From the NCBI GenBank assembly GCA_001179505.1, contig CDMY01000989.1:1-64000 (forward strand): a DNA stretch of 64,000 nucleotides, written 5' to 3'. The stretch is from Vitrella brassicaformis CCMP3155 (Eukaryota; Protista; Chromerida). The notes beneath the pieces are model-generated. The model saw only the letters and a list, made by a program, of their open reading frames with translations. It was not told the DNA's origin and made no database searches. Within the stretch, counting starts at the first letter, position 1, and every line of letters begins with the position of its first letter. Shown here piece by piece: positions 10,789 to 62,206 of the stretch. Made by a program: the position numbers and the translations under genes.

Positions 10789-10801
10789 TGCGAGCTTAGC
10801 T
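10789..10801 (-). promoter_or_regulatory. Candidate promoter/5'UTR motif AGCTAAGCTCGCA (exact copy 1)
   Basis: Plus strand tgcgagcttagct in the 182-bp spacer between the divergent rsmI and PKD2-like genes. Confidence 0.6.
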
Positions 10802-10941
10802 GAAGGGAGGCCAGAGTGCTTCACACAGGATGCAGAACATGGAGCAGTCGAGCGATCTCTGAGAAGCCCCCCAGCCGTCAGTCTTTCTGTCCAAGGAAAA
10901 CCATAGCCATCTGCATCCCCCGTAGGCGACGAGGAAAAGCA

Positions 10942-11197
10942 ATGGCGGAGGTGAACTTGAGCGACGATGAAGGGGAGCTGACCATCAGCCAGCTGCAGCA
11001 CAAGGTGCGGGCTTTGCAAAGCGACCGGCACAAGAGACGGGAGTTCGCCGAGCGGTTGCAAGAAAAGATGAAGGCCCTCAACTCAGAGCTGGCGGCGAGG
11101 AGGGAGCAGGTGGACACACTCAATGAGATGCTCAGCTTCGAACGGAGGCGCGGACACGACGAGGTAATTAAAGCAACCGTCGGTCCGCCCGCACACA

Positions 11198-11238
<41 letters not shown>

Positions 11239-14200
11239 GTGTGCCGATTTGGCGCATGTACACATGCATTCGGATCATTGCATGCAGGCGACGGTTGAGA
11301 GGATGGAGCACGAGAAGCGGCTAGCAGAGCAGGACGAGCGCATCCGTGAGATCCTGGAAGAGGTGCTCTTCTCGAATGTGCCGCAGGGCATGGCCAAGTC
11401 GACCCGCGGCGGGCTGCTGCCCACCAACGTCGACGAGACCCAACTCATGGTCAAAGGGTGGGCGGGGCGCAGAAGAGACGCACCTCCAGGGGAAGAGGAT
11501 GAGCAGCTCGCGGTTGACACGGTGCTTATCACCTATGTCCCGGAGAACAGCGACCTGCGCTTCAACCTCACTTATCGCATCGATCCGACCACAAGACTCC
11601 ATGACCTCAGAATAGGTACGTCCACATATTCCGTTTGACTGTCTGTCTGCCCGTGGTGTGTGCAGATGCGTGCAAATATTGGGGGATCAGTGAGGTGGAT
11701 TATGTTTTGAAGAACGAGGCCAACTCGAAGGCGCCCGACTCGGGCGCCGTCTCGTCTTTCTTCCGCGACGCAGAGATGGCCCGGCTCTACCTGGTCAAAA
11801 AGGACACACAGCAGACCAAGCTCAGCGAGGCCGAGCAGAAGGCCGTACAGATACGCAGGGGGGGCAGAATCGGTCTCGGCTTGGCCACAGAGAGGGGCGG
11901 ACAGGGAGGTGGGGAGGGAGACAAGAAGCGCGGCATGGGTGTGACGATGCTGGGCTCGACGATGCTGGGCTCCACTGGCCCAGCGCCGAGCAGCATCGAC
12001 TACCACGAGGTGGCGAAGCAGTTCCCCGGGCTGCTGCAGGTGCTCAAGGTGCACGATATGGGCCCCTCCTACCACCTGGAGAAGATCACACCCCCAGACA
12101 TATGCGCTGTGCTTGCCTTGCTCACCATCTGCCTCGTTCTTTTCATCATGCAAAATCCTCCAGGTAGGTATTCGAAAATTGAGAGACCACGAGAGAGAGA
12201 AAGAGAGAGAGAGAGAGACATGGCCACGTATACTGTTTGTTTGCTTGTCTGATGCAGGTGCGTCGTTTTGGTTGCTGTCTGGTATGAGTGCCACCTTGCT
12301 GGAGCCGCGGTACGAGTCGGAGCTGGACAGCTGGACGCCCTCGTTCAGGTCCATCGGCCGCGGGGGGGATGCACTGCGGTGGCTCAACCAGTCACTGGCA
12401 TACGCCCTCTTCGACGATACATCTGACTTCAGACGGTCAGTCAGTTTGACCAATGTGGGGTCTCTCGGAGGCAATCAGGTAGGTGCCTATGTCCGTGTGC
12501 AGTTTCAATTCAGCTCCTGGATTCTTGAGACTGAGGCAGCAGCGGGTGAGCAGGCAAGGCAAGGGACATCCACACACAGAGGCCGACAAGAATGCTAGTC
12601 TGTGTGCGGGCCTGTACGTGTAGGTGAAGTCTGAATCGTGCGAGCGCACCGACATGGAGCCCGTTGTGGCTGCTGACGGTATGCCTGCATAAACATTGGA
12701 GAGGATTCTCTTCCCTTCTTCCGTCTCTTCACCTGTTTGCCTTTGTTTGGCAGGATGTTATCCCGCCCTGGTATCATCGGCCACCCGGGAGACGGCAGAC
12801 ATATCGTCCGTCGCTGGTGTGCCAGTACAGCCACGATGCGTCCTCTCCACTGGCACTCAAATCGACTGCGGAGACCCTGCAACATTTGTCGACGCAAAGG
12901 TAGTAGAAATAGACGAAGACACAGAGATGAGTGAGTGTCTCTCTCTCTTCCTCTCTCCCTTATGCGCGTGTGCCGACCATCAGGCCAATTCCAAGGACCA
13001 TCGTGTGTCGTCCTTGCAGGGTCGTGTGCAGCGATATGACGCGAGCGGGTACCAGACGGACGTGCCGATCATCGTTGGCGACACGGACACGTCCTCCACT
13101 CCTGCAGACTTCACACAGTGAGTGGCTCACATGTAGTCATCAAGCGTTGGTTTCATTTGTGTGTGGTGGAGTATAAATATCCTCGCAGGCATCTGACGAA
13201 CCTAGTGGATGCCAAGTGGGTCGACGTGTCCACACGGATGCTGCTGGCGGAGTTCTCCGCCTACAATGGCAACTTCGACAGATGGTGCGTGCAGTGCAGT
13301 GCAGTGCAGACCTGCCTGCGTGACCCAAGACACACAACAACCACATCTGCATATCTCTGTGTGCGTGTTCCATGTGTTTGTGTGCGTGTGCAGGCTGTCA
13401 TTTCAGTTTCTGTTTGAGCTGTCACCGTCGCACTCCGCCCTGCCCACAGCACGCATATTCCCACTCAGAGTAAAGCAATGCGACACAAACACAATGATCC
13501 ACATGTGGATCATTCCTCGATGATGGTTGGCAGTTGCACACGGCGGAGACGTACAGTGAGAATTTCATCATGTTCATGGACTACCTGCGGCTGGTGCTGG
13601 TGCTCTATGTGGGCCTCTTCATGATACCCAAGGGCGTCAGACACAAACACAGACACAAAAAGGCCGGTGCGTTCAACCTCAACACACTCCCACACAGTCC
13701 ACCCATCCATCGATTCTCTATGTGTGTATGTGGTCGATCAGGCTACCTGCATTTCCTCACTGTGGACGGTCTGGTGGACACGGCGACGGTGCTTTTGTTC
13801 TTCATCACGTTCCTCTCCCGGCTGGTGGTCTTTCAGCGCCGGTCGCTCAAGTCGAAAGAAGTCATCAAACAAATGAAAGAATCATTCCAAAGCTGGTCAA
13901 TCAGAATCCGAGAGTTGGGAGTGTGCGTGTTGAGCGGTGTGTGTGTGTGTGCAGGTCAGAGATGGGCGCCTTATATGATTCGATGAACATCCTGGAGGGC
14001 CTCTTGGTGCTCTGTCTGCTCATACGCATTGTCACATTCTTCAGACTCGCGAGACCGGTGTGTGTATGCAGCGGGTGCCCATGGACTGCGCGCACACTCC
14101 CTGTGTGTCGCTCTCTATCTCTGTCTGTGTTTAGGTGTATCTGTTGTGGCGTGTGTTGGGTCGCGCCATTCCCCAGTACATCTACTTCGCCTTTGTCTTC

Positions 14201-15069
14201 CTGCCCGTCTTCATGGGATTCGTCTTCGCCGCACACGCCATTTGGGTACACACAACACACCGTGCGCAGAGGAAAACAGAGAGGCAGCAAAAGGCACACA
14301 GTGACATCCATCCATCCATCCACTCTCTCTCTCTCTCTCTGTCTTAATGACAGGGTCCTTATCTCGAGTCCTTCGAGAGTTTTGGTCGATCGTTCATCTC
14401 ACTCATGATGTTCCTCAATGGGTCAGTGAGAGAGAGAGTGAGGGAGAGACGGATACTGAGAAGGGACCGAACAGGGGATGTATCGATGTGTTTTGTGCCG
14501 GTCTGCTGTCTGTCTGGTGTATTTGTCAGCAATCTGAATCTGCGTCCTCTGCATGATGTCCAGCAGTACTGGACGGCCGTCTTCGTGGTCAGACACACAC
14601 ACACACACACAGAGACAGAGAGAGAGAGAGAGACTCAAAGATTGAAAAGGTGACTGTGTGTGTTTTGTGTGCGCAGTTGCTCTTTTTCGTCGTTGTGTCC
14701 CTTCTGCTGGTCAATGTGTTCATCGCAATCATGGTCGACGCACAATACACAGTCCGCATCACTGACGGTCAGCCAACCACACAGACAGGCACCCAGCCAT
14801 CCAGCCACATCATTACATGGTCCATTTGTGGGCGTGCAGATGGTCAGGAGGTGTCCAAGTACCGCTGGGGGGTGAGGGAGTGGATCAACTGGATGTTTCC
14901 CACCTTCATCGCGGGTGTCATGATCGACTACCTCGCACCCCTCATCCCCGGCCTGCAGACCGACAAGCAGCCTCCACATGTGAGGCAGACAGGCAACAGG
15001 GCGACACAGAGAGAGGGCGGACACGCAGACACGACAGAGTGGGACAGAGAGGGGGGAGAGGAGGAATGA
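10942..15069 (+). CDS. Polycystin-2 (PKD2/TRPP)-like cation channel with an N-terminal coiled coil; 3' end approximate
   Basis: Exons give a coiled coil, a first TM (ICAVLALLTICLVLF), a TOP-domain motif (LVDAKWVDVSTRMLLAEFSAYNGNFD, FLFELSP), and further TMs (YLRLVLVLYVGLF, LEGLLVLCLLIRIVTFFRL, YIYFAFVFLPVFMGFVFAAHAIW, FFVVVSLLLVNVFIAIMVDAQY), typical of PKD_channel proteins. Confidence 0.8.
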
Positions 15070-15450
15070 ATGACACTACCTACACATGGGGGGTTGGGGG
15101 CCTGTGTGTGTAGTTGGTGTCTTGTGTGTGCGAGCGTTTGTAGTTAGGGCATATGTGTGTATGCGATGGATGGTCTGGTGCGACGGTATGTATGTGTCTG
15201 TCTGGGTGATAGATAGCCAGCCGTGTCGACGTGATTTCCATAACGTTGCACTCAGGTCGCGTCTCTAGGCCACGCACACACGCACGACGGACGTCCACTG
15301 GACATCCGGTGTGGGTCCTGTCTCTCTCCTCTCACACCACACCATCTCCCCCCAATATGTACACATACGCAATCGCACACATGTATACACACAACAGCTA
15401 AGCAAAGCTATGCTAGGGTAATTAAGGGCATCAACCCATCCAATGGTCAC

Positions 15451-17053
15451 TCATTCGTCCTGCAGCTTCGCCTCCACCTGTCGCCGCACCTGCATGATAA
15501 CACATACCACACCACCACACAGGCCAATGAGGCTGTTTCCTGTCTGCCTGTCTGTCTGTGGGTGTTACGAATTCGAGTGAAGATCTATCGAGTTCATTGA
15601 TAAGGGCTAAGACAGCACACAGGATGTTGTCATTCCGCGATGTGGCAGACGGGGGGGCCACCACACCTGAACGAATGCAGCACCCCGCCAGCCCAACGAC
15701 ACAACACATTCTCTGACCATTCATGTGGCTCATTCCTGCACCATCTCTCACCGGCGCTCGCGTGTCTGCCTATTTGGTGTCGTCTGCCCGGGTGTTGCGC
15801 AGCTGCTCTTTCAGCCCTGCTCTTCTGCCGCTCACCCACACCCACAGCTGCAGCTGCTGCAGCAGCAGGAGGGCCGCCAGGAGAAACAGAGGGAAACACG
15901 GCATCGCTCAAGCTGCGATGCTCTGAATGACGGAAACAAACACGCACACAGAGATTGCGTCCCGGGTCTTTTTGTGTGTATGTTGCATGCATGACTGACC
16001 TCTTTCCAGTTTCTGCACGTTTGTCGGCAGGGGTGAGGGCGAGGGCGATGATGTGGGCACCCGCCCGCCCTCTCGCTCCCGCACACCACCGGCCCTGTTG
16101 CCTTTGCTGTCCACAGCAGCGGCATCCGCACCATCTGCCACATACCACCAGCCACCTTACACATCACCGCACTGACGGGCACCTGTGTTCTTGTCTGTCG
16201 TACCGGTGCGTTCGGGTGTTTGTCGCTGCACGGCACCGCCCCCGGCCCCGTTGGGCAGACCACCACCACCACCAGCGGCCTGTGATGACCCGACCACATC
16301 GGGGAGGTCGGATGGGGGCGTGAAGGTGCGGAATGCGTTGTCCCGGGCTAATGCAGCGGCCTCCTCACGCTCCTCTGCCGACACATCTGCAGCCCATGGA
16401 CACACACAGTGCGCGCGTGTGTGTGTCTGTGTGTGTCGTGCCTTTGCTGTCGAGTTTGGTGAGAGTGGGTAGGCAGTGGATGACGAACGGCCGATACAAC
16501 ACGTCACGCGAGCAGGGATTGTCGCTCAACCTATCGCACGCAGCCGACAGACAGCAGAGAACAAGACACAAGGACCCTGTGCGTGTGTGTCATCTTGCGT
16601 GTGTGTGTGTTACTCACCACAGGACGCGCAGATTGGTGAGGGTCTGGAGGTAGTACAGTTCGCCCAGATCCACTATGTCGTTCTTGCGAAGATACAGCTC
16701 AGCCAACCGCGGACCTGACGCACTCACAGCAAGAGAGCCACACATCTCCTCGACGAGACTCAGTGCATGTGTGTGTATTGCTACACTGTGCGAAGTCTTT
16801 GAGCGAGGCGATGCGGTTGACCGACAGCGAGAGCACCTCAATGTTCTTCAAACGACTCAACACCGACACCTGCAACCACAACCAATCACACGGCATGCAT
16901 GCATCGAAATGATGAGTGCGCCTTTCTTCCCCTCCATCCCGCCCATCTCTCTCTGTGGCTCACGTCGTGTATGTCATTTCCCCAGAGGTTGAGGTTTCTG
17001 ACGTTGGCGAGGCTGTCCACTTTGGCCCTCGCGAGGATCAGCTCCTCAGTCAT
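15451..17053 (-). CDS. CFAP410: CFAP410/C21orf2-like ciliary leucine-rich repeat protein
   Basis: MTEELILARAKVDSLANVRNLNLWGNDIHD/VSVLSRLKNIEVLSLSVNRIASL, LAELYLRKNDI, LRVLW/L.DNPC, YRPFVIHCLPTLTKLD, and the C-terminal NDNILCAVLALINELDRSSLEF/VRRQVEAKLQDE*. Confidence 0.88.
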
Positions 17054-17174
17054 CGTCGAGCCTGACGTACGCATCATGACGCTCCAGTTTTTAAAAGCTC
17101 GCTGCCGCGGGGGCCACAGGGGGCCGCAGTCTTTCCGAGTCGAGCTGCAGTGGCTGGTAAACAGTCGACCACCG

Positions 17175-18159
17175 ATGTTCGGGGAGGTCTGCTTCCGCAG
17201 CAATGTACAAACAAGCCGACATACTGATTGTGTGATGGCTGTGTCCGTCAGGACGACATCTTCGAGGCTGTGGACAAAGGCGATTTGCTAGGCGTCACGC
17301 AGCTCCTCGACAAGCACGGCAAGGAGATGTTGGACACACGAGACGAAGATTCACTCGGCAAGGTAGGCAAATGTGAAGACAGACATGCCTTCCCTTTCAA
17401 TGTTCATTCCTGTGTGTGAAGTACACGCCCTTCATCACGGCTGCATTGAAAGGGCACGTTGAGATCATGGAGGTCATGTATGACAGCTACGGCCCGTCGA
17501 TACTGCAGCAAAAGACCGACGTACCACCACATCCAGAAATATATGCATCTGGTGATGGGATGTTCTGTGCGGTTGTGGACTGCAGACCGGTGCCACTGCC
17601 CTGCACGCGGCTGCATGGGGAAAGAATCTTGCAGCTGTCAATCAGCTGCTGGCGTGGGATCCCAAGCTGATCGACGGACGCAGCAACGCAAGAAAATACA
17701 CATTTCTCCAATGGGCTGTCGTGTGTCGATTGTTTGTTTGTCAATGCAGACCAAGCGGACAGCCTTCCACGAGGCTGCCGACCGCAATGCTGTTGATGTG
17801 ATGAAGGTCATCCACGCCATCAAAGGCAACAAAGTGAAGGAGCTCCTCGCAGAGACGGACAACGTGAGACGCATACACAGGGAGGGAAGGACACACACAT
17901 AGTGTCTCTCTCGTGTGACGTGTCAGGGCGGAAACACGGCACTGCATATGGCTGTCACCTATCGCGATAATCTGGCTGCTGCGGCTCAGCTGTGCGAGTG
18001 GAGCGGTGGTCAGCTGCTGGACATCAAAAACAACGAGGTAAGTCCACACAAGTCTGTGTCATCGGTGATCGTGACCGATGGCAACAGGGTGTGACGCCGT
18101 GGGATATGGCGGCAGAGAAGCCCAAAATGAGAAAGGCCATCGAGAAATACAAACAGTAA
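17175..18159 (+). CDS. Small ankyrin-repeat protein, tandem copy A (7 exons)
   Basis: MFGE/DDIFEAVDKGDL/YTPFITAALKGH/TGATALHAAAWG/TKRTAFHEAA/GGNTALHMAV/GVTPWDMA...KYKQ*. The intron-4 donor is GC (17688) where the paralogs have GT. Confidence 0.8.
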
Positions 18160-18356
18160 ACCGATCGTCAGCGCTGTGGGTGCGGGTTGCGTGGCGTGGG
18201 GCGTCTAGTCTGTGTGTCGGTGTCAGATCGGGAAGCTCGCCTGGGTTTCAGGGGGCTGGCGTCTCCTCAAGTTCGGAGCAACCTGAAGACTTGCAGTCTT
18301 GTCCAGCAAGGGTGCTGGAGGACTGGAGCGCCAGCACTGTGTAACAAAACGACATA

Positions 18357-19311
18357 ATGATTGTGTCGTGGCTGTGTCCGCAGGACGACATCTTCGAGCC
18401 CGTCACTAAGGGCAGCGTCCCTGCTGTTATTCAGCTCATCGACAAGCACGGCAAGAAGATATTGGAGACACGACACGAAGATACAGGCGCCAAGGTATGC
18501 AACCGTGAAGATGACAGAAGTACAAGTCTTCCCTTTCTGTCTTCTCCCATTCCTCGCATTCCGTGTCAGGCCACGCCGTTCATTGTGGCCGCACGGTGGG
18601 GGTACGTTGCCATCATGAATATCATGTACATTCGTTACGGCCCGTCGATACTGCAGCAGCGAGACAACGTACTGACACAGCCGAATATCCGTTTATCCAT
18701 GCTTGATCCATGCTGCTCGTGGACTACAGACCAATGCCAGTGCCCTGCACTGGGCTGCATTCTACATGCATCTCGAGGTCGTCAATCAGCTGCTGGTGTG
18801 GGATCCCAAGCTGATCGACGCACGCAACGATGTACGAGAACACATGTCACCGATGGCCTGCCGTGAGTCGACTCTATGCATGTCGAATCCAGACAAAGCA
18901 GACGGCCTTCCACAAGGCTACCGAGTCTGATGCTGTTGACGTGATGAAGGCCATGCACGCCATCAAAGGCAATGCCCTCCTCACAGAAACGGACAATGTG
19001 AGACGCAAAGAAAAGGGGAGGACACAGAATGTCTCTCATATGTATGTGTAAACACACAAGAATGAAGACACGGCTCTGCATCGGGCTATCGACTGCGGGA
19101 AATCAGCTGCTGCGGCTCAGCTGTGCGAGTGGGGCGGTCCTCAGCTGCTGCACATCAGAAATAACAAAGTAAGTCCGCTCAAGTGCGTTCATCATCGATT
19201 GTTTTGCGTAATGTGACCATCTCATGACAACAGGGTGTGACGCCGTGGGATATGTCGGCTGAGATGCCCACAATGCGAAAGGCCATCGAGAAATACATGT
19301 ACACACAGTAA
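18357..19311 (+). CDS. Ankyrin-repeat protein, tandem copy B; ancestral exon 1 degraded, in-frame ATG inside former intron 1
   Basis: Exons 2-7 are intact with GT-AG junctions. The exon-1 equivalent reads caagggtgctggaggactgg versus caatggtgagggaggtctgg in copy D (ATG and donor lost). ATG 18357 runs in frame into DDIFEP. Confidence 0.7.
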
Positions 19312-19390
19312 AGGAATTGTCAAAGCAGGAGCGCCAGCGCTTTACAAACAGCCGACATGATAATTGTGTGATCGCTGTTTCCGCAGGGCG

Positions 19391-20328
19391 ATGTCGATCT
19401 TCGAGGCTGTGGACAAAGGCGATCTGCTGGGTGTCACGCAGATCCTCGACAAGCACGGCAAGGAGATGTTGGACACACGAGACGAAGAGCTCGGAGTATG
19501 TCACCGTGAAAACGTGAAATGCCTTCTCCTTCAATGTTCTCCCTTTCCTACTTGCGTCAGGCCACGCCGTTCATTGAGGCTGCGGCGAAAGGGCACGTTG
19601 CCATCATGAAGGTCATGTACGATCGCTACGGTTCGTCCATACTGCAGCAACGAGACAACGTACCGACACAGCCAAATATCCATCCGTCGATGCTGCTGTG
19701 GTGATGAGATGTCTTGTGCTGTCGCGGACTGCAGAATGGTAGGACTGCGCTGCACTGGGCTGCATGGGGAAAGAAGCTTGCAGCTGTCAATCAGCTGCTG
19801 GCGTGGGATCCCAAGCTGATCGACGCACGAAGCAATGTAAGCGAGCACATGTCTCCGATGGGCTCTCGTGTGTCGATTGTATGCATGTCGAATTCGGAGC
19901 AAGCAGACAGTCTTCTACACGGCTGTCCAAAGGGAGGCGGTTGACGTGATGAAGGCTGTGCGCGCCATCAAAGGCAACAAACAAAAGGAGCTCCTTACAG
20001 AGACGGGCTATGTGAGACACACATACGGGTGGACTACGTACATGTACAAAATGTCTCCTTGTATGTGTGATGCGTCAGGACGGAAAGACGGCGCTGCATG
20101 TGGCTGCTTCCTGGGGTAGACCGGATGCTGCGGTTCAGCTGCTGGAGTGGGGCGGTTCTCAGGGTTCTCAGTTGCTGGACACCAAGAACGACGAGGTAAG
20201 TCCACCCTTCACCATGTCCTCTCTTCACCATCGATGATCGTGACGTATGACAACAGGGTGTGACGCCGTGGGATATGACGGCCGAGAAGCCCAAAATGAG
20301 AAAGGCCATCGAGAAATACAAACAGTAG
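19391..20328 (+). pseudogene. Ankyrin-repeat copy C; new ATG at 19391, exon-5 acceptor apparently mutated (possible pseudogene)
   Basis: MSIFEAVDKGDL..., ATPFIEAAAKGH, NGRTALHWAAWG, DGKTALHVAA, GVTPWDMT...KYKQ*. The acceptor atccag of copy B is attcgg here, and the flanking exons lie in different frames. Confidence 0.55.
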
Positions 20329-20626
20329 AGGAATCGTCAGCGTTGTGGGTGCGGGGTGCGTGGCGTGGGGCGTCTAGTCTGTGTGTCGGTATGGAGATAG
20401 GACAGTGGTATACACCAAGGGATAGGCTGTGTGACGTGACTGTGTGTCTGCGGACTGGTCACCTTGGTTGCTTGCATGGGCGTCTCTCGAAGACAGAGAC
20501 TCGGCAGCAGAGGTCTCTGTGCTTTGGGGAAGACAGATGCTCTGCACTGGTTTGTTGGACGAAGGAAAAAACCACAGAGGTACCTGATTCAATTTGTCGT
20601 TCACACCTGTGGTGGCTGGTTGGTCA

Positions 20627-21071
20627 TCATAGGACGCGCAGATTGGTGAGGTTCTGAAGGTAGTATAGTTCGCCCAGATTCACTATGTCATTCTTGCGAA
20701 GATACAGCTCGGCCAACCGCGGACCTGACACACACACAGCAGAAGATCCACACCTCTCCTCGACGAGTGCATGTGTGCGTATTGTTACACTGTGCAAAGT
20801 CTTTGAGCGAGGCGATGCGGTTGACCGACAGCGAGAGCACCTCAATGTTCTTCAAACGACTCAACACCGACACCTGCAACCACAACCAATCGCACGGCAT
20901 GCATGCATCGAAATAGATGTGCAGTGCGCCAAAGTTTCTTCCCCTCCATCCCGCCCATCTCTCCGTGTGGCTCACGTCGTGTATGTCATTTCCCCAAAGG
21001 TTGAGGTTTCTGACGTTGGCGAGGCTGTCCACTTTGGCCCTCGCGAGCATCAGCTCCTCCGAGTCAGTCAC
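20627..21071 (-). pseudogene. CFAP410: Truncated CFAP410 duplicate (first three exons only)
   Basis: Near-identical to 16620-17053, but the start ATG is GTG (21071) and the Trp codon before the third donor is TGA (LRVL*). No downstream exons follow. Confidence 0.85.
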
Positions 21072-21150
21072 CGTCGAGGTGGGGGCGGAGGGGGGCTGCA
21101 GTCTCAGTGACACCCTCGAGTCCCAGCCGCATGCCAGTGCTTGTCCAGCA

Positions 21151-22142
21151 ATGGTGAGGGAGGTCTGGAGCCCCAGCACTGAACAAACAGCCCACAGCTT
21201 GTGTGATGGCTGTGTCCGTCAGGACGACATCTTCGAGGCTGTCAACGATGGCAATTTGCTGCGTGTCACGCAGCTAATCGACAAGCGAGGCAAGAAGATA
21301 TTGGACACACGAGACGAAGATTCCTTCACCAAGGTAGGCAACTGTAAAAGGTCGCCTTTCTGTGCTTTCCCATTCCTGCACTCTCCATTCCTTTGACTGC
21401 AGTTCACGCCCGTCATTGAGGCTGCAGAGGAGGGGAAAGTTGACATCATGAAGGTCATGTACGAGCGGTACGGCCCGTCGATACTGCAGCAACGAGACAC
21501 GGTACCACCACAGCCAAATGCCCATGCATGGCCATGGTGATGATATGTCTTGTGCTGTCGTGGACTGCAGGGTGGTGAAAGCGCCCTGCATTGGGCTGCA
21601 TTCTGCAAGCAGCTTGCAGCTGTCAATCAGCTGCTGGCGTGGGATCCCAAGCTGATCGACGCACGCGACAGAGTAAGAAAGTACATGTACACATATCTCC
21701 GATGGGCTGTCGTGTGTCGATTGAATGCACATTGTATGCAGACCAAGCGGACAGCCTTCCACGCGGCCGCCGACCATGATGCTGTTGATGTGATGAAGGC
21801 CATGTGCGCCATCAAAGGCAAAGACCTCCTCACAGAGACGGACGACGTGAGACACACACAGGGGGACTTGCATGTATATGGTGTCTCTCTTGCATACGTC
21901 AGAATGGAGACACGGCACTGCATGTTGCCCTCACTATGGGTCATTTGGCTGCTGCGGCTCAGCTGCTGGAGTGGGGCGGTCCACAGCTGCTGGAAATCAA
22001 GAACGACGAGGTAAGTCCACCTTCACCATGTCCTCTCTTCACCATCGATGATCGTGACGGATGGCAACAGGGTGTGACGCCGTGGGATATGACGGCCGAG
22101 AAGCCCAAAATGAGAAAGGCCATCGAGAAATACAAACAGTAG
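21151..22142 (+). CDS. Ankyrin-repeat protein, tandem copy D (intact, 7 exons)
   Basis: MVRE/DDIFEAVNDGNL/FTPVIEAAEEGK/GGESALHWAAF/TKRTAFHAAA/NGDTALHVAL/GVTPWDMT...KYKQ*, with canonical junctions. Confidence 0.85.
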
Positions 22143-24967: not shown

Positions 24968-24980
24968 AGCTAAGCTCGCA
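24968..24980 (+). promoter_or_regulatory. Candidate promoter/5'UTR motif AGCTAAGCTCGCA (exact copy 2)
   Basis: Exact 13-mer in the 124-bp spacer between the divergent hydrolase and transporter genes. Confidence 0.6.
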
Positions 24981-32298: not shown

Positions 32299-33969
32299 CT
32301 ACTCACATGTGTTGTCACACCATGTGTCTCGCCGCTGACCAGCTCTTGCAGCCGCTTCCCCTACAACATGTCTCTGTCTGACGGGCGAGCAGGAGCTCCC
32401 CCGCCTCATCCGCGCCCTCTGCAGCGCCTCGTTCTCGCCCCCCCTGTCCACCGCAGTGTCCATCGCCCTTGGCGTGTGCTTGACCGTCGTGACACTGGTG
32501 TCGCTGATCTGAGGGCCTGGCCCTTCAGGCGGTGCGGGCTCAGCTACAGGCAGCGGGCCCATGGCAGTGTCTATCCGCGTTCGCTGTGTGGTCACCACAC
32601 TCTGAGAGCGATAGCAGGGATGGTCATTATTCGTGATGAGAGGAAGGGCTTCCCGTCTCGCTGTGAGAGGCGGCTCCTGGCTGTCCGCAGCCGTTTCCTC
32701 CCCTTCAATCTTACGATGGGTGGGCGGTGGAAACTGTGACGTGCTGTCATTGGACGCACCGCTGCGGCTTTTGCTGCAGCTCCGAGAGCTCCCACCATCT
32801 CGACGAGACATCCTGGGCGGGCCAACGATATCTTCGCTCTCTTGCCGTTGTTGGTCTTCCTTCCGTCTGGCGGAATGGGCCTCACTTTGGCTTCCCGGCG
32901 CCGCCAGGGGAAGACTGCCGATCCCCTCCCGGGTGGTTTTCTGCTGCATACGTCGGGTGAAAAGCCTGCCCTCCTCCTTGAGCGTCCTCCGCACAAACGC
33001 CACGTACTGGTCATCCTTCGCGGCATAGTGCATCAGCCGTCGATTCTCTGGGGACGTGGTGACGGGGTGCTCGTCGCTGCCCGGCATGGACTGGACGCCG
33101 TCCGGACGGAAGAGCGACGAGCTGCGGATGGGGTATATATCGATCCTCGCCCGAGTGCTGACCGACTCGTGTCGCTTGCGGCCGCGGGAAAGCTCCCGCT
33201 TGTGCTTTGGCTTCCTGTGCTCGACGGGAGGGCCGCCCGGCTGACCAGAGGGGTCTGAATGGGTGTGTTGGAATGGCGAAAGAGGGGACGGGGGAACTTG
33301 GGGCTCTTCGACTGGCTCTTGCTCCGATGCAGTGGGGCTCTGCTGCTGTTGCCGGTGGCCACTTGTGTGGATGCATGAGGGTGGCAGTGAGGGCGTGGTT
33401 GTGGCTTCTGTTTGAATGGATGGCTGAGCAGGCCGTTGCAGTGGCGGAGACACCAACAAGGGCGAGCCAGACGAGGCGGCCTGGTCCCCCCCTCCCTCAC
33501 TTGCTTTCGTCCTCACGTCGCCGCCGCCGTCCTTTCTGGCCCTCCTGCCGTCTTTCCGTCTGGAGGGCGTGTGTTTGTCCCTCTGCTCGCTGCCGATCCT
33601 CCGCTCAATGTGCTTGAGCCATACCGACTCGGAGGCCGTGCGATTCATGGCATTGTTGTCGTGGTGCACTCCAGAGCGGCTTTGCACTCTCTTGTGGAGC
33701 TCCTTGCGATGCGCCACCACGCACATGCCGCTGCCGCACGCACCACTGCCATCCGACTCAGCGCCGTCAGCAAGTGAGGGAGTCGCCCCGCATTCCGCTC
33801 CTTGTCCCTCCAGGACCTCTGCTGCATTGTAATTGATGCTCGGGGACGGGAGAGAATCGCAGTGGCTCTTTGTCACCTCCATCGATAGTTTTACTTCTGC
33901 CACAGTGCATGCATGGGGGGGCTCTTGGGGGGCGCGAGCTCGGGGCAGTCTCCCTCTGAAAGTCTCCAT
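32299..33969 (-). CDS. Long low-complexity ORF, probably the 5' exon of the metallopeptidase gene
   Basis: An open frame of more than 550 codons from ATG 33969 with a plausible donor near 32345 and an acceptor near 32280. No recognisable domain. Confidence 0.45.
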   Translation of the reverse strand: METFRGRLPRARAPQEPPHACTVAEVKLSMEVTKSHCDSLPSPSINYNAAEVLEGQGAECGATPSLADGAESDGSGACGSGMCVVAHRKELHKRVQSRSGVHHDNNAMNRTASESVWLKHIERRIGSEQRDKHTPSRRKDGRRARKDGGGDVRTKASEGGGDQAASSGSPLLVSPPLQRPAQPSIQTEATTTPSLPPSCIHTSGHRQQQQSPTASEQEPVEEPQVPPSPLSPFQHTHSDPSGQPGGPPVEHRKPKHKRELSRGRKRHESVSTRARIDIYPIRSSSLFRPDGVQSMPGSDEHPVTTSPENRRLMHYAAKDDQYVAFVRRTLKEEGRLFTRRMQQKTTREGIGSLPLAAPGSQSEAHSARRKEDQQRQESEDIVGPPRMSRRDGGSSRSCSKSRSGASNDSTSQFPPPTHRKIEGEETAADSQEPPLTARREALPLITNNDHPCYRSQSVVTTQRTRIDTAMGPLPVAEPAPPEGPGPQISDTSVTTVKHTPRAMDTAVDRGGENEALQRARMRRGSSCSPVRQRHVVGEAAARAGQRRDTWCDNTCE

Positions 33970-36759: not shown

Positions 36760-36772
36760 TGCGCGCTTAGCT
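36760..36772 (-). promoter_or_regulatory. Motif variant AGCTAAGCGCGCA (1 mismatch)
   Basis: Plus strand tgcgcgcttagct between the divergent ATGs at 36624 and 36921. Confidence 0.5.
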
Positions 36773-36920
36773 GCGACACAGTGCGAGCTGGAGGTTTTGC
36801 CGATGAGATCTCCATGTATGTCCGATGCTCCGCCGAAGAGCTGCTGCAGAGAACGACTGATGGAGAGGAGGGCCGTGGATTGGATTGAGTGATTGATCTG
36901 TCTTGTGTGTGGAGGGGTAG

Positions 36921-43269: not shown

Positions 43270-43943
43270 ATAGGGGACCGGACAAGTGACTGATTGCGTG
43301 AATTGGTGGGACGATGTGCGAGCGACATATACACACATGTGGGTGGCCGTATGGATGATGATGGTGTGGTCGGTGAGTAAGTGTGTATGTGGCGGGTCGC
43401 TCATGGCCGGATGGATTCTCTCGATCGGTCGGCCATGGGTGTGGCTGTGGAGTGAGTGAGGGTTCGTGTGTAAGGCGTTTGTCTGTGAGCTGAGTGTATC
43501 TTATAGTATTTTGTTGCATGGCATGCATCTGTCCGATCCGCGCGCCTCCATCAAACCGGCCAGCCGTTTGCAAAATCAGTTGCCACACTTGCCATCATCA
43601 ATCAATCATCCGATCCAGTGTCCCTCTCCGTCCAGGCCGCGCTGCTCTTCATCTTGACGGCCATCTCACCCTCACCGTCAATATCCTGTTTGCTGGTCTG
43701 GTTGGCATCCCTCTCGCGGCAGATCACCGCCAGAACGACCGTGGTAAGCTACACGGAGCACATCTGCACCGAACCGACCATAGAATCACGGCAGATCTGT
43801 CCTCCTGGTCTGTGGATGGCTGCAGATGGGTCGGTAGTAGCTCATCGGCTAGGTAGGTTGGCTGCACCCATCCTCCATCCATCCATCCATCCATTCTTTG
43901 CTGCTGCGGTCATGCAGGTGCGTCTTGGGCGAATGCCACACAC

Positions 43944-50963: not shown

Positions 50964-50976
50964 TGCGCGCTTGGCT
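50964..50976 (-). promoter_or_regulatory. Motif variant AGCCAAGCGCGCA (2 mismatches)
   Basis: Plus strand tgcgcgcttggct in the 129-bp spacer between the divergent ATGs at 50919 and 51049. Confidence 0.4.
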
Positions 50977-51048
50977 GGCAGACTCCCCCTCTCGGGGTTT
51001 TCACTCATCGCTGGTTTTGGCATGTTCTGAGGATGGTGGTTGGAAGCG

Positions 51049-53054: not shown

Positions 53055-54718
53055 TGTGCAGCATCACCATGACGGTTTGTTGAGGCGCCTTGACAGTGCT
53101 GTGGATGATGTGAGTTGGGAGCTGGACCTGTCAGCTGCGTGTGAGTGGGCCTCGCTGAGGTGGGCCCTCACCGGCCAGCATCACGACGGCCTCCTAGCGA
53201 CCGTCGAGCACCTCATTCAGCGGCACAGACACAGAAACACAGCTCGCCAACCGGCCAGGCAGCAGCAGCCACCACCGTCATCGGCTCCACATGTGCCGCC
53301 CCGTGACCCTGAGAGATGGACGGTGGCGGCATCGCGCCCAAGTGGCCTGCAGACGCCCCTTGTCGACCTGTTGGCCTGCCTGGCCGTGCCAGGGGGGCCA
53401 AGATGCATCGAACAGAGCGATGATGCCGCGTCAGCCGCTGCGTTGCGTTGGTATCGGGTGATGCCGTGCACTAGTGAGGGTGTTGGGGGGTTCGACGTGA
53501 GCACCGTTGGTGTGCTGGAGAAGGGATTGTCGGCACATTGCAGGTGGGATTGGTGGAGAGAGAGAATGTTCTCTCTCTCGTCATGCATACAAACTTGTGT
53601 GTGTGTGTGTGTGTGTGTGGTTGATGCAGGCGCTATGGTGAGATGGCTGAGCGGCTGGGTGGGGCGCTCTCCGCCGAGATCGGTGCTGTCATCGACGCGC
53701 AGACACTACCCACAGGTGAGCAAGCAGCCAATCGACCTAACCTGCCCACTGTGGGTGCATCGCCCATCTGTGTGTGTGTATCCCATTGGTGGCTGTTTGC
53801 TAGGTCTGTTAGCCAAGTTGGATGGTCTTCAGCGGCTGCTGGACTTGACATGGCCCCAAGGTATGTGTGTGCGTGTGCCATGCAGGCCATCCATCCGTCC
53901 ACCTACCTCTGCTCTCCCTTGCAGTTGCAGCAGCAGTGAGGCCGCAGATCGAGTCGGCTCTCCAAATCAGGACCACCAGCACCAAAGACAAGCAGCCACA
54001 GCCAACCGAGGCACCGCCCCCACAACCGCGCATGGCCGCCCGCCTCCCCTCGTCCACCATGAGGTCCCGCGGGCCGTTCAGCACCACAAGGCGGCGACTC
54101 GCACCACCACAGCAGACATCCACAGCTGACAGGGGGCGGAGGCAGGACACTCCACCATCACTATGCCTCAAGGGCGGTCATGCTGCGGCTGACGATGGTG
54201 GTGGTAGTTCTGAGGTGTGTTGGTCGCTGTCGGCTGGCCAGGCGGCCCGCCAGCTCATGAGAAGGAGGATGGCAACTGATCAAGGTGGTGGGAGTGACGG
54301 TGTCTGGGGTGTTGGCCATCCTGTGATGGTGCCGCGGCAAGTACTGGAGGCCTGGTGCGAGTGCGGTGATGACGGTGATGCTGCGGGAGACGGAGGACGA
54401 TACACTGAAGACGACCGGGCTCGACCGCTGGGAAAGGCGCTGGTGGATGTGTCGAGGCGGATTGTGAGCCATGAAGGCCTTGGGAGCGGCATGGTGGCCC
54501 TTGTGCTGCTGCCGACCATGGCTGACTTCGGGGCGACTGGTGTGTTGGGCGGCGGCGGTGGCGGCGTGTCTATGGCGACTGACTGGTGTGCATACCGACG
54601 TGAGTTGGCAGCGGTGCTGCGGGTGAGGGAATGGGCGCATGGTGATGATAGTGGCGTTGGTGGTGCTGGTGTGCCCGTGCCAGTGTGTGTTTCGGTTAGA
54701 GACTCGACGACCGAATGA
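51049..54718 (+). CDS. Helical-repeat organellar RNA-binding protein (heptatricopeptide/OPR/FASTK-RAP-like), probably mitochondrial
   Basis: Repeats of about 37 aa such as ITPLTLGNLLNALARLDFRDKALL, LKALDLVQVINAFARLEWRDVPLL, MDCGGLSLVANGYGRLEVRHERLF, LRDVAMIQHAFAKFDF. The presequence MRIRPFSTTAAA is basic and Ser/Thr-rich. Confidence 0.75.
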
Positions 54719-56685
54719 CCGACTGAATGACTGCTGATGGATGGATGGATGAACCACACACACACAGACACAGACACACACACACACACAGGTGTCACTC
54801 ACTGCCGTCATGCTGTCATCATCATCATGCGATCCGATCCGTTCCCACCCACCCACACAGACAAACCTCCCTCTGACTCTCACAAGTGCAGACAGTCGAG
54901 TCGGCCACTCAGTCAGGTTCATTCAGAAACACAGCATTAGTGAGCGGGCTGGTCAGTCTGGATGGCTGCAAAGGTGCCAACTGCTGAACCTCCGCTCTCC
55001 CTCACTCCTCCCCTCCCTCCACCGTACCATAAACACCCACCACCCACACCACAGAAACTGCTGCAGTCAATGCGTCCACCTACTCTCTCGGCAGAGTATT
55101 TCGTATGTGTGTGTGCGGGTCGATATCTCTCTCCCTCCCTCCCTCCCTCTGGACAAGTATGGGTGTGACCAAAAACACTTGTCTGTGAGCTGAGCTGTGT
55201 GCGACCGACCAGTCATCGAGTGCACCCTCACTCTCAGCCAGTTAGTGCTGCCTTCGGTCTGGTCGCCAGTCAGTCAGTCAGGTCGTGGCTGAGTAATTCT
55301 GTGTGGCTGGCCGATGGGAGCGAATCCGTCGATCGATCGACCTTCTTTCTCTCTACGCGAGAGTGAGTGAGTGTGTGGCCCGGCCCGCAGATGTGTGCAT
55401 GAAATGGATGGAGCCTGGCCGGCAGGGAGGGCAGTGGGAAGCACTGACCGGCCGACCGGCCGACAAAAATAAGAGAAACACCATTAGCCAGCCAGCCAGC
55501 CAGCCAGCCAGTCTCTCTCTTTCTGCCAAAATCTCTCCGATGGAGGGAGGGTTGGACGAGTTAGCATCCTGCTGGTTCCTTATCAAGAGGGCTGGTCAGG
55601 GTCCCACATATCCACGCAATATGTGCAGTCAGTCAGTGCCATCCAATTGCGCAAAGCATGCCGGCTGGTTCCACGCCACCATACTACAGAAAAGGATGGC
55701 GGCAGCCCTGTGCTCTCTCTCACCTGTCTGTCTGTCGTCCATACGCACCACAGCCGCCCTCCCAACACACACACACGCATCATGATGCACACACGCCCCG
55801 AGGCAGGATGGTGAAAGAATTCCTCGGGGGGAAAAAGACAAGACATCATTACGAGAGTGAGGGGAGGGCAGGGCGGGGGGAGAGCACCGATCGGCCGGTC
55901 GATCGGCCGGCCGATGGACATACACACACAAAACTGCTTGCAGACGTCGGCCAGCAAGAGACGAATTCGCCTGGAGCGAACCGCCCTGCTGGCTGGGCCG
56001 CGCTACGCTACGGATGGACGGATTGGTGGGTGGATGCATGGATATGCACACGGACGCACTCATTCACGTAGGCAGGAGGCAGACAGGCAGGCAGGCAGGG
56101 GACAAGAGTCAGGAAATCTCATCTCTCTTTCGGCAGGTATCTAGTGTAGCAGTCAGTCATTTCTCGCGTCATTCCAAGGGTCTGGACTGCCCATGTTCCA
56201 TCTCTCCGCGCTGCTCTCTCCATCATGAGCCCGACGCGACGGGGCGCGGGTGGCGTATGTGCACATACGTCACCGCGACCAGTCACACAGAGGCCATGAT
56301 GGACAGAGCAGCACCGAGCAGCAACACTGAGAAAGATACACACCGATGAATGGTGCTGCACCAACAAGCACTTGGAGGGAGGGAAGAAAGTCAGTCTCAA
56401 CCAACCGACTCTACTGATCTGATCTCAACCAACTGAACTGAACTGAACTGAACTCTCGCTGCTGAGCAGAACGAGTCGACTGCCTGGCGCACGTCCGTCC
56501 AGTCAGGCAGGCATTTCTTTATATGCATGCACGTATGCATCCCCCCTCCATATGTCTCTCTTACAACAGACAGACAGACAGGCGGACGGACGGACAGACA
56601 GAAGAAAGAGAGGACAGGCAGGTCAGCCGCCGAGTGAGTGAGGGAGTGTGAGGGAGTGTGTGTGGTGTCCGTGTGTGGTGTGTGT

Positions 56686-59600
56686 CTATGCGGCGGCCTT
56701 CTCCGTGGCGTTGGTGGCCGTCCCTGCTGTCGGTGCCGCACCGCCGGGCGGGGCGGCGCCCGTCGCCGTCTTGGGCGCGTTGGGGTCGAAGTTCGCTGCG
56801 GCGGACACACACAGACCACACACAACACAACACAACACAGTAGCCAATTTCGCTCTCTCTCTCAGAGTGTTTGGTGTCTGGTGTGTTGTGTTGTGTTGTG
56901 TTGGTTGTCGTACCGAAAGACCTGACTCTTGCCATGGGCGACTGGTCTGGTGCGGGTCGCTCGGCGTCCTCGAGCTTCCAAATGATCTGGCCGTACTCCT
57001 TGATGGAACGGTCAGTCGTGAACTTGCCCATACTCGCGGCGGCCTGATTGATCAAAGAAAGGCCCAGTGGATGGAGCAACAGATGCACCGATGGCCGGTG
57101 TGGGTGGGTGGGTGTGCGTCAATCATCATGTGACTCGCCTTGATGGACGTCTTGATCCAGTTGGTCTGGTCTTTGTACAGCGCGTCCACCTGCTCGTTGG
57201 CCTGCACACACACCACACACACCACACCACACAGATCCGTGTGTGTGTATGTATGCAGCAGCAGCAGCTGCTGCTGTGTGGTTGGCCTTGACCCACCTTG
57301 CAGTATGAGGGGAAGTCGTGGCAGAGGATGTAGAAGTCGCCGTTGTACCCTCCGCCGTTGTTCCTGATCTTCTCAATCTGTCACCCACACACACAAACAC
57401 AAACACCACACACACAACAGACATGCAGTCCCTCCCTGCCTCTCTCCCTCTCCCTCCCTTGCTACCAGTCCGACGAACTCCGAGTGCGCCTCTCCGTCTC
57501 CGAGTGAGAATTTGCCGCTGACGATGGCGTCCATGACCTCCCGCAGCTCAGCGCTGATGGGGTAGTTGCCGTTCTTGGCCTTCTCACGGATGCCGGCCAC
57601 CTCGGGCTCCAACGCGCCAAAGATGAACATCGTGTCCTACACACAACAGACAGACAGACAGTGGGGGGTGGGCGAGAGGGGTGGCAGGTGTGAAGGGTCA
57701 AGGTACCTACCTCTCCGCATTCCTCCCTGATTTCGACGTTGGCTCCGTCCATGGTGCCGACGATGAGCCCGCCGTTCATGACGAATTTCATGTTGCTCGT
57801 GCCCGACGCCTCGGTGCCGGCCGTCGAGATGTGCTGAGATATGTCTGATGGAGGGATGAATGGATGGATGGAGGCACAGAGGGACAGAGGGACAGATGGG
57901 TGGAGCAAATAACACCGCGTGTGTGGTTGGCGCTGACCTGATGCGGGGATGATGGTCTGGGCATTGGACACGTTGTAGTTGGGCATGAACACACACTGAC
58001 AGACAACCGGGGACACACACAGAGACAAATGGACACACACAAACGAAAAGGCCACAAACGAACGGGGCAGCAACCCACCACACAACACGCCACACACTCT
58101 TGTGTGCCACCCAGCCGACCTTGAGGTACTTGGATGTGTCCGGGTCGTTGTTGAGGACGAGGCCGATGTTGTTGCATAGCTTGATGATGGTCTTGGCCAC
58201 GGCATACCCGGGGGCCGCCTTGCCGCCGATCAGACACGCACGCTTGACCTGCTTATCGCGGTCGCCGGGGCTCATCTTCTTCAGCTTGAAGTAACTGCGT
58301 CACACACACACACACACACGGGTCATGACCCACACAGAGAGGAGTGAGTGTCTGTCTGCCTCTCTGTCTGTCTGTCTGTCTGTCTGTCCGTGTGTGTGGG
58401 AAGGGGGATGTTACCGACCGGTGGATGATGTAGAAGCAGTTGATGAGCTGTCTCTTGTACTCGTGGATGCGCTTGACCTGGATGTCGAACAGCATGTTCT
58501 CGGGGTCCAAGTCGATGTCGCAATTCAACTTGATCTACACAACACAACACAACGCAGGCCCACACAGCGGAAACAGAGAGACAGACAGAGTTATCTGCCT
58601 GCCTTTGATGTCGTGTGGTGTGTGTGTGTACCCATTTGGTGAGTTTGACTTTGTTCTGCTTCTTGACGTCAGCCCACTGCTTCTGCAACTCAGTGCTGTC
58701 CTGTGCACATCACACACACACACACACACATGGAGCCCAGTGTGTCTGTGTGGTTGAGTGGACCCGTACGAGGTGGTTGACGAGTCCCTGGAGCATGGTG
58801 AGTTCCTTGAGCCAGCTGTCGGACCCCAGCCACTCGCTGAACAAGTTGGACAAGCCACGGTTGGCGCAGTGAATCCTACACACACACACACGCACACACA
58901 GACATACACACGAGATGATAGCCAGCCGCACGAGAAGGCGTGTGTGTACCATCTCCGGGGCGTGACGCCGTTGGTGACGTTGACGAACTTGTCGGGCTGG
59001 CCCTTGGCCTGGTCATCGACACACACACCCATACACAGATGGGATGCATCCACGCATCTCCCTGTCTGTCTGTCTGTCTGTCTGTGTCTTGTATGTGACG
59101 GTGGGTGGGTAGGTGGGTACTGGACCTTGTAGTAGTCGACGAACTCCGGGAAGAGGTCCTTCTTGACGAGTTCCGAGTGGATGGCTGCCACGCCGTTGAC
59201 CTTGTTGGAACCGATCACCGCCTGATCCACCCATCCAATGTGACGCAACACCGCCCGCACAGCACACAGGTGACCCTGCTTGCTTGGTGTGTGTGTGGAG
59301 GGGGGGGCAGTACCTACCATGTTAGCCATTCGGATCATCTTCTCGTATCCCTCTTGGTAGATGGACATTTTGGAGAGTTTCTCGCCGACGTCGCCCCACG
59401 ACTCGCGCACCTCACACAGGAACTTGTAGTTGATGTCGTTGATCAACAGCAGATGGCTGACAGACACAGACAGACAAAGAAACAAACAGAGAGAGAGGGA
59501 TGTCGAGTGCACTGTGTGGTGATTTGATGGCTCTGTGGCTGCCCTACCGCGGAAGCAGTTTCTCGATGAGGTGTGCGGGCCATTTCTCGAGGGCCTCGGG

Positions 59601-61243
59601 CAGCACCGTGTGGTTGGTGTAGTTGAAGCACTACACACACACATCCACACACCACTCCTTGCCGTGCGTGTGCATCCCTCTCTCCCAACCTCCCTCTCTC
59701 GGTGTGTCCGCACCGACCTGTCTCGTGAGGTCCCATGCCTTGTCCCAGTCGAGCCCCTCGATGTCGATGAGGAGGCGCATCATCTCAGGGATGGCGATGG
59801 TCGGGTGGGTGTCGTTGAGCTGGAAACACACCTTGGACGGCAGCTCGTCCCAACTGCGGCCCTCCTTCTTCTTGAACCTGATGATCAATGGATGATCAAC
59901 CCACACACACTTGTTGGTGTGTTGGTGTGTGTGATTGTTGGCCGGTGCGGTGTGGTGTGGTGTGCGGCACGTGCCTTCTGAGGCAGTCCTGGATGGTGGC
60001 GCAGACGAAGAAGTACTGCTGCTTCAGACGCAACTCCTTCCCCTCCCACCTGACCAAACACACACACACGTCTCCATCTGGGCACTAGGGTGTGTGAGTG
60101 TTTACGTGTTGTCGTTGGGGTAGAGGACGGCCGAGATGTACTCGGCACGCTGGCGCTCCTTGACAGCCTGCAGACCACACAGGATCGACATACACACACA
60201 CACACACACACAGAGGGAGGGAGGGAGGGAGGGAGGGAGATGACCACAATGGTGGCGTGGGAGTGCATTGTGTGCAGTGTGCGTACGTCGAGGAACTGGC
60301 CACGGTTGAAGGCATGGAAGTCAAACTCCTTGCCGGGACACGCTGCATCCAACACGCAACACACACACACACACACAGATGGATGGATGGGATCCCCTCA
60401 CCCTCTCCCTCTCTCTCTTTGGCAAGGCACGCACCTTTCCAGAGTCTGAGGTTGATGGTGTTGTACGTGTCGAATCCCGGGATGGGGTTGTCGTACGCCA
60501 TGGCCTGCACGATCTCGCCGCCCGTCCAGCGGTGCCGCTCGCGACCCTTGTCGTCCTTGTAAGTGTCCACGTGACTGACACACAACACAACACAATACAC
60601 ACACAAAGAGCCGCCGATAAGTGGAGCGGACTCATGTGGTGTGTGGTGTGTGTGTTGCCCCTCCATCAATGCAGTGGCTCACGCACGCACCCGTAGAACC
60701 GCACGGCGTAGGTGACGTCGGGTCGCTCGATTTCCCATGGGTTGGCGGTGACGAGCCAGTAGTCCGGGTGCTCCACCTGACGGCCCTCGACGATCTTCTG
60801 CTCGAAGATGCCGTACGTGTACCTGACACACACACCAAGGCAGCCCATCTGTCTGTCTGTCTGTCTGTCTGTCTGTTGTCTGTCTGTGTTGTGTGTGTGC
60901 GAACTAGCCTGATGCCGTAGCCCCAGACGGCATAGTTGAGCGTGGCCATGGAGTCGAGGAAGCAGGCAGCCAGACGGCCCAGACCGCCATTGCCCAGCGC
61001 CGGGTCGTGCTCGTGCTCATACAACTCCTCCTGAGGGAGGGATCGATCCATCAACCAGCCAACACCATGTTAGCCACCGACTGGCGAGTGAGTGAGTGTC
61101 TGTGTGTGTGTACCAGGTTGTATCCGATGTCTGCGAGTGCCTTCTTGTAGTTGGGCTCGATGTCCAAATTCACCAACGCGTTCTGCATCGCTGCACAACA
61201 CAACACAACACAACACACAACACACAGGACAACACACACCACA

Positions 61244-61276
<33 letters not shown>

Positions 61277-61800
61277 TGTGTGTACCCCTTCCTAGCAGGA
61301 ACTCTAGGGAGAGGTAGTAGCACCTCTTGACGTCCTTGGCCGTGAAGAACTCGTTGGTGTCGTTGAAGGTCTCGATCAGCCGGTCGCGGATGCTGAAGGC
61401 CGTCGCACGGTAACACTCCTCCGTCGCAAAACTGAACCGCGTCGCCGCCAACGTGTACTCCTAAACACACAAAACAAATCACAAACCAAACCACGCATCA
61501 TAACACACCACACCACACCACACCCCGCCAGAGAGGGGCAGGTACTCGACACAAGTGCCCACGCACTACACCATCCATCCATACCACGTGGTTGACGATT
61601 CCCCTCTGGATGGAGCCGACGTCCGGTCCGAGGTAGTACTCCATGAGCTGCCATATCTTGTTGCGCTTGGCGTCGGCGTTGGGGTCGAAGTCCTTCTGGT
61701 GCATCCCCGCCATGTCTCGAGGCACGGCGCCCGTCAACTTGGAGAACGATGCCTTGCGCATCATCTCAAAGTTGTGGTCAGCGTGAGGGTCAAAGGCCAT
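56686..61800 (-). CDS. Glycogen/starch (amylopectin) phosphorylase, GT35, more than 20 exons
   Basis: [92 protein letters not shown], the PLP-lysine motif [24 protein letters not shown] and [14 protein letters not shown]. Confidence 0.97.
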
Positions 61801-62180
61801 GGTGCTCAAAGTGAGGGGAGAGAGGGAGGGAGGCAGTCACAGACGGACGCAGCCTCGCAGTCAGGAGGCTCTCACAGTCACGGTCAAGAGAGCAAGGGAG
61901 GCAGCCAGGCAGGCAGGTGACAACCCTGACACAGACACACAGACAACACACAGACGCCATTCAAGCCGAGCGGCGTGTAGTGGTGCAGGCAAACACGGGG
62001 CAGACCGGCAGACAGCCGGCCACACCCGCAAGCACCCCACCCCACCCTTGTGACGAGCCCGTGTGTGGTTGTCTCTCTGTGTGTGTCTGGCTGCTCACCA
62101 CTGCTGCTCGCACCAAACGCTGTAAAACCACGCACAGGAGCCGACCAAACACACTCCCAGCGGAAAAAAAGGCGTTTTCA

Positions 62181-62206
62181 AGCTAAGCTCGCATGCTAAG
62201 CCCGCA
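62181..62206 (+). promoter_or_regulatory. Motif AGCTAAGCTCGCA (exact copy 3) followed by the tandem variant TGCTAAGCCCGCA
   Basis: Seen directly between the divergent phosphorylase and Trm10 genes. Confidence 0.6.

Follow-up and report, generated by a model that had tools for sequence, protein, structure and literature searches.

The first 64,000 nucleotides of scaffold CDMY01000989.1 (228,309 bp; assembly GCA_001179505.1) of the chromerid alga Vitrella brassicaformis CCMP3155, a stretch (1-64000) referred to here as the window and numbered in scaffold coordinates, contain a recurrent 13-mer, AGCTAAGCTCGCA, which is over-represented and non-random and, within the window, is associated specifically with the spacers of head-to-head (bidirectional) gene pairs. 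The consensus of its copies, AGCYAAGCNCGCA, is interpreted here, with a probability of roughly 60%, as the putative binding site of a sequence-specific DNA-binding protein in the very short promoters that such pairs would share. All motif statistics given below rest on this one 64-kb window.

Exact copies of AGCTAAGCTCGCA occur three times, at 10789-10801 on the minus strand and at 24968-24980 and 62181-62193 on the plus strand, compared with a mean of 0.01 in the 100 dinucleotide-preserving shuffles that served as null model for the counts. At up to two mismatches, nine matches were found versus 0.91 expected, and none of the 100 shuffles reached either three exact or nine near copies. An initial annotation of this DNA had reported the same three positions, and the variants it added, at 36760-36772 (one mismatch), 50964-50976 (two mismatches) and, as a tandem copy, 62194-62206 (two mismatches), were all recovered by the mismatch search. 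Taken together, six strong copies at five loci yield the consensus, with ten positions being invariant and variation occurring at positions 1, 4, and 9 only. A position weight matrix built from the six sites scores these sites at 18.5-22.4 bits, the next-best position in the window reaching 15.8. The information content of about 20 bits and the non-palindromic arrangement of the conserved positions suggest that one factor with a defined orientation is involved. Among the 13-mers listed with at least three dispersed copies, all others belong to ankyrin paralogue modules (17-22 kb) or to CA-rich and other simple intron repeats. Introns of the window are generally rich in CA-rich microsatellites (56.8, 58.5, 60.6, 61.2 kb, and many others), e.g., CACAA repeats in the phosphorylase introns, and these microsatellites are the source of most repeated 12- and 13-mers.

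The small number of exact copies, only three, and a GC-rich genome (54-62% G+C in the window) with many simple repeats could be taken to indicate chance recurrence or a functionless remnant of some short sequence that was dispersed or mobile, e.g., a target-site or terminal fragment. This explanation is highly improbable in view of the shuffling results, the confinement of every copy to 2.5% of the sequence, and a distribution of changes over the 13 positions which is that of a binding site and not of decaying repeats. Moreover, the similarity stops at about 14 nt. When 50 nt to either side of the copies were aligned, conservation was confined to the 13-14 nt core, and an origin as fragments of a dispersed repeat or transposon, which the initial annotation had itself named as an explanation that would count against its reading, was rejected on this ground. 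A structured RNA gene or element was likewise rejected, as folding of 73-86 nt around each site was no better than that of shuffled sequences (z from -0.86 to +0.96) and neither tRNA genes nor Rfam families (at gathering scores) were detected in the 64-kb window. With neither flank similarity nor predicted RNA structure nor an Rfam or tRNA match, the 13-mer thus behaves as a short autonomous element. It is apparently an undescribed motif, in line with the earlier claim and so far as the literature was searched: the literal 13-mer returned unrelated matches only, mostly from human mitochondrial DNA studies, a full-text search on chromerid promoters found no motif study, and the Vitrella genome paper is without a cis-element analysis (PMC4501334).

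Eight head-to-head pairs are present in the window, with ATG-to-ATG spacers of 97-458 bp which sum up to 1,622 bp, i.e., 2.5% of its length. All six strong copies are located inside five of these eight spacers, and five independent loci would all fall within such a fraction with P of about 1e-8. No strong copy was found in the six tandem upstream regions (5/8 versus 0/6, Fisher P = 0.028). The localization in divergent-gene spacers, already claimed before, thus holds at all five strong loci, while the specific tie to head-to-head as opposed to tandem arrangements is an addition of the present analysis. Gene positions were taken from the public coding sequence (CDS) starts at 145 (+), 3943 (-), 6451 (-), 8428 (-), 9123 (-), 10666 (-), 10942 (+), 17077 (-), 17175 (+), 21050 (-), 21151 (+), 24891 (-), 25022 (+), 33882 (-), 34020 (+), 36624 (-), 36921 (+), and 43518 (+), and those in 44-64 kb (50919, 51049, 61800, and 62259) were derived in this analysis from open reading frames (ORFs). 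Accordingly, the head-to-head status of three motif loci is given by public gene calls and that of the loci at 50964 and 62181 by our own ORF reading. In Vitrella, head-to-head pairs are reported to be in excess and intergenic distances to have a median of only 92 bp, for which reason shared compact promoters are to be expected (PMC4501334).

The same result emerged from a scan that made no use of the motif and compared all 6-, 7-, and 8-mers in promoter regions (3,062 bp) with the whole window. The word AGCTCGC has six of its ten occurrences in promoter regions, in six different head-to-head spacers (P = 2e-6), and comparable concentrations were obtained for GCTAAGC (5/7), AGCTCGCA (4/4), and AAGCTCGC (4/5). 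Sub-words of the motif ranked first among the 7- and 8-mers, and 6-mer fragments of it ranked second and third behind AACCCT. The AGCTCGC core additionally occurs in two spacers without the full 13-mer. One is the 97-bp spacer of an LRR/ankyrin pair (17077, -; 17175, +), with AAGCTCGC at 17095-17102 on the plus strand; the other is the 137-bp spacer between a WLM-domain gene (33882, -) and a gene for a protein of 262 amino acids (aa; 34020, +), with AGCTCGC at 33934-33940 on the minus strand. Altogether, seven of the eight head-to-head spacers hold some version of the motif, the exception being 21050/21151. The 13-mer is thus over-represented relative to composition-matched sequence and concentrated in 5' intergenic regions as opposed to coding, intron, or 3' sequence, as expected of a promoter motif.

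At the individual loci, the exact minus-strand copy at 10789 is situated in a 275-bp spacer between an RsmI-like rRNA methyltransferase gene (10666, -) and a polycystin-like channel gene (10942, +), and the exact plus-strand copy at 24968 in a 130-bp spacer between a beta-lactamase-domain gene (24891, -) and a UAA/nucleotide-sugar transporter gene (25022, +). The 458-bp spacer 61801-62258 between a glycogen phosphorylase gene (ATG 61800, -) and a TRM10-like tRNA methyltransferase gene (ATG 62259 or 62409, +) carries the third exact copy as the first of an abutting pair, the second being TGCTAAGCCCGCA at 62194-62206 on the same strand. The one-mismatch variant AGCTAAGCGCGCA at 36760 (-) is found in a 296-bp spacer between unnamed genes for proteins of 215 aa (36624, -) and 1346 aa (36921, +), both of unassigned function, and the two-mismatch variant AGCCAAGCGCGCA at 50964 (-) in a 129-bp spacer between a VPS9-domain gene (50919, -) and a heptatricopeptide-repeat (HPR)-like gene (51049, +). 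Local duplications accompany the motif in three of these spacers: besides the abutting pair 62181/62194, an extra core AGCTCGC(A) (AGCTCGCA) at 36783-36789 on the minus strand precedes the equally oriented 36760 copy by 10 nt, and the 10789 copy is followed by two units of TCGCAGGGT. Protein-binding sites typically show homotypic clustering of this kind. Gene calls and domain matches agree with the earlier statement that the flanking genes are functionally unrelated, which points to a general promoter function rather than to a regulon.

Unrelated neighbors, a roughly central position in four spacers, and the restriction to head-to-head spacers would also suit a boundary or nucleosome-excluding site which, much like an insulator or the site of a general regulatory factor, separates divergent units and activates neither of them. 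This is considered improbable with regard to the off-centre position of the 62181 pair and the small sample. Besides, the idea overlaps with that of a protein-binding promoter element, from which it is inseparable by sequence.

The distances to the next downstream ATG, as recounted, are 29, 41, 65, 135, and 44 nt for the copies at 10789, 24968, 62181, 36760, and 50964, respectively, in agreement with the earlier values. The gene with the nearer ATG has the motif on its sense strand at each of the five loci (P = 0.03, binomial). The initial annotation had stated that all copies point toward the nearer ATG, and this stands at five of five loci; a fixed orientation, however, does not follow from five loci with P = 0.03 and two narrow margins, the distances being 122 versus 140 nt at 10789 and 135 versus 148 nt at 36760. 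Four of the five copies are located at fractions of 0.39-0.63 of very short spacers, i.e., near the middle, and the nearer ATG is thus a weak criterion there; the 24968 copy, for instance, is 41 nt from the plus-strand ATG and 76 nt from the minus-strand ATG. Only the long spacer 61801-62258 is informative about placement. There the copies at 62181 and 62194 are separated from the TRM10-like ATG at 62259 by 65 and 52 nt and from the phosphorylase ATG by about 380 nt, and a gene-proximal position is thus suggested. As for the partial core at 17095, its presence was confirmed and its orientation toward the nearer ATG was not, with the LRR ATG at 17077 being only 18 nt away and the core pointing away from it.

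These features bear on the alternative of a strictly positioned core-promoter or initiator element, or of an element in the transcribed 5' untranslated region (5'UTR), which would act on the single gene it points at, either by setting the transcription start site (TSS) or by affecting translation or stability within the mRNA leader. In its favor, the sense-strand position relative to the nearer gene extends from the five loci to the additional copies at 62194 and 36783, the pair in the 458-bp spacer is gene-proximal and not central, and the stretch between motif and ATG is devoid of ATGs at four loci. Still, this alternative is rather unlikely, as the orientation statistic is weak, four of five copies are near the spacer middle, the ATG distance varies from 29 to 135 nt, no conserved RNA structure was detected, and the 17095 core points away from its nearest ATG. 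In addition, the 50964 copy is directly followed by two ATGs (offsets 0 and 4) which would give rise to out-of-frame upstream ORFs if transcribed, and this mildly favors a position upstream of the TSS. The 10789 copy is 122 nt from the annotated CDS start of the RsmI-like gene at 10666 and 29 nt from an upstream ATG at 10759, which is in frame and would provide a hydrophobic N-terminal extension, and the real leader may therefore be shorter than 30 nt. The 31 residues added by this ATG (MIGASFPLLMAFGASVDGFLLL...) form a hydrophobic, signal-peptide-like start; the public model may be N-terminally truncated, with the longer N-terminus fitting a plastid-targeted protein.

With the preferred reading of AGCYAAGCNCGCA as a protein-binding site in shared promoters, the short spacers (97-458 bp) and the distance of 29-135 nt to the ATG would put the motif at most a few tens of bases away from the transcription start. 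A putative factor bound there may recruit or position the transcription machinery, or it may keep a shared nucleosome-free region open; in both cases the motif would serve housekeeping-type genes of unrelated function and not a specific regulon. Several points weigh against this reading. The independent loci number only five and stem from one window, the gene pairs at two of them come from our own gene reading, and the ATG distance shows no fixed spacing to any landmark. Furthermore, the motif is always on the sense strand of the nearer gene, which a role at the RNA level or as initiator would fit equally well. The earlier interpretation as a core-promoter or 5'UTR element, possibly bound by an ApiAP2-type factor, is accordingly supported in part, with the ApiAP2 factor as binder being pure conjecture. 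A bolder version, possible but doubtful, is that the 13-mer represents a signature element of the bidirectional promoters of Vitrella, perhaps of all chromerids, which would be present at thousands of head-to-head pairs and be read by a lineage-specific factor (e.g., of an expanded ApiAP2 family) that sets TSSs or nucleosome-free regions.

Two weaker matches are located outside the head-to-head spacers. The partial core GCTAAGCTC at 9474-9482 (-) lies in a tandem intergenic region, 351 nt upstream of a gene for a 167-aa protein (9123, -), and is a weak match that may be due to chance. A further AAGCTCGC core at 18233-18240 (+) precedes the second module of an ankyrin gene by about 70 nt and may be the relic of a duplicated promoter. 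The partial cores described initially, at 17095, 18233, and 9474-9482, are thus present at their positions, with the exception that the one at 18233 is not in a spacer but inside the annotated 631-aa ankyrin gene (17175-20328). This gene is built from three modules that each share 45-64% identity with a separate 199-aa ankyrin gene, and in the second module the start codon is lost (ATG to AGG), with the AAGCTCGC core kept about 70 nt upstream. The LRR/ankyrin head-to-head pair as a whole is duplicated (17077/17175 and 21050/21151; region 15451-22142). Footprinting across the four ankyrin modules detected the AAGCTCGC core before modules 1 and 2 in a form that is not cleanly alignable, which makes it weak evidence. 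A chimeric protein query for related sequences retrieved the WLM-domain gene and, apart from it, nothing but an unrelated Tara Oceans transcript, and no relative turned up when metagenomes were scanned with the WLM protein.

Regarding the neighboring genes, the RsmI-like gene (9645-10666, -) features a single 89-nt intron with a GC-AG donor (cag|GCAAGT), and the WLM-domain gene contains nine introns of 60-157 nt with weak consensus. The exon at 9648-10481 (-) matched an annotated protein of V. brassicaformis CCMP3155 with 100% identity, in line with the chromerid origin presumed in the initial annotation. For the 347-aa gene at 43518, 405 two-intron and 5,127 three-intron solutions had near-equal coding scores. 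In the region 44-64 kb, a Pfam search of several ORFs was mostly uninformative. The VPS9 assignment is based on a Pfam match on a later exon, and a hand-spliced TRM10-like fragment matched TRM10 chains of the PDB with E = 2e-4. The HPR-like ORF, extending from 51049 to about 55800 on the plus strand, shows a presequence-like N-terminus, clear heptatricopeptide/FASTK-like repeats, and a strong third-position GC bias. Comparison of its exon with the protein database gave no match, its own gene included; the public annotation may lack this gene or contain a different model of it. Vitrella is described to possess about 70 HPR genes (PMC6212722).

Further words are found in the promoter regions beside the 13-mer. 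Telomere-like words (AACCCT/AGGGTT, CCCTAAA) are enriched there, e.g., at 9308-9326, 10775-10790, and 116-122. The gene at 9123 (-), for instance, is preceded at about 190 bp by a block AACCCTAACCCTGAACCCT, and a prefoldin ATG at 29 nt by CCCTAAA. AACCCT, the top 6-mer of the scan, has 7 of its 14 occurrences within the 3,062 bp of promoter sequence (P = 1.5e-6), and words of this type may constitute a telo-box-like second promoter element. In a small sample, GGTTTT[CG] has four of its nine window occurrences in three motif-bearing spacers, at 10896-10902 (-), 36793-36799 (+), 50996-51002 (+), and 51013-51019 (+), and those at 36793 and 50996 are on the strand opposite to the 13-mer, directed toward the partner gene.

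Chromerids are the photosynthetic sister lineage of the apicomplexan parasites, and Vitrella is a free-living relative of the malaria parasites. To our knowledge, almost nothing is known about the transcription of nuclear genes in chromerids. A high-information motif that occurs in most divergent spacers of a random 64-kb window would make a strong candidate general promoter element and an entry point to the factor that binds it. Possible uses include the annotation of TSSs, the construction of expression tools for chromerid algae, and the question of whether apicomplexan promoters derive from such an architecture. If the idea of a signature element were true, it would offer a first handle on the general promoter architecture in free-living relatives of the Apicomplexa. 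The kind of object is ordinary, and its value lies in being a concrete and testable lead.

Among known systems, the apicomplexan ApiAP2 motifs (e.g., TGCATGCA) belong to a related lineage and are likewise short, promoter-proximal words. As a difference, TGCATGCA is absent from the consensus AGCYAAGCNCGCA, and GCATGC arises only at the tandem junction 62190-62196. The window contains six copies of TGCATGCA, one of them in the head-to-head spacer 33882/34020 (33906-33913) and the other five in gene bodies, including those at 16896 and 20900 in the duplicated LRR genes. With the following three systems the resemblance is one of function, an analogy and not a membership. Oomycete INR/FPR elements and other long initiators of protists, to which the 13-mer may be compared, are lineage-specific, high-information, and oriented elements located some tens of bases before the ATG in compact genomes without obvious TATA boxes. 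They overlap mapped TSSs at a fixed position, and the ATG distance of the 13-mer varies from 29 to 135 nt. Sites of yeast general regulatory factors (Reb1, Abf1, Rap1, Tbf1) and the telo-box/site II pair of plants are shared by numerous promoters unrelated to each other and contribute to the formation of nucleosome-free regions. Despite a lack of sequence resemblance, the recurrence of the 13-mer in unrelated promoters appears similar, and the promoter-enriched AACCCT blocks of the window recall the Tbf1/telo-box situation. Mammalian bidirectional promoters are enriched in GABP/ETS, NRF-1, YY1, and ZNF143 (SBS) motifs, which are located near the TSS and, in the case of YY1 and ZNF143, depend on orientation. 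Their sequences are unrelated to the 13-mer, which is known from sequence alone and whose host is a chromerid alga; the likeness would consist in specific sites that cluster in the compact promoters of head-to-head housekeeping genes.

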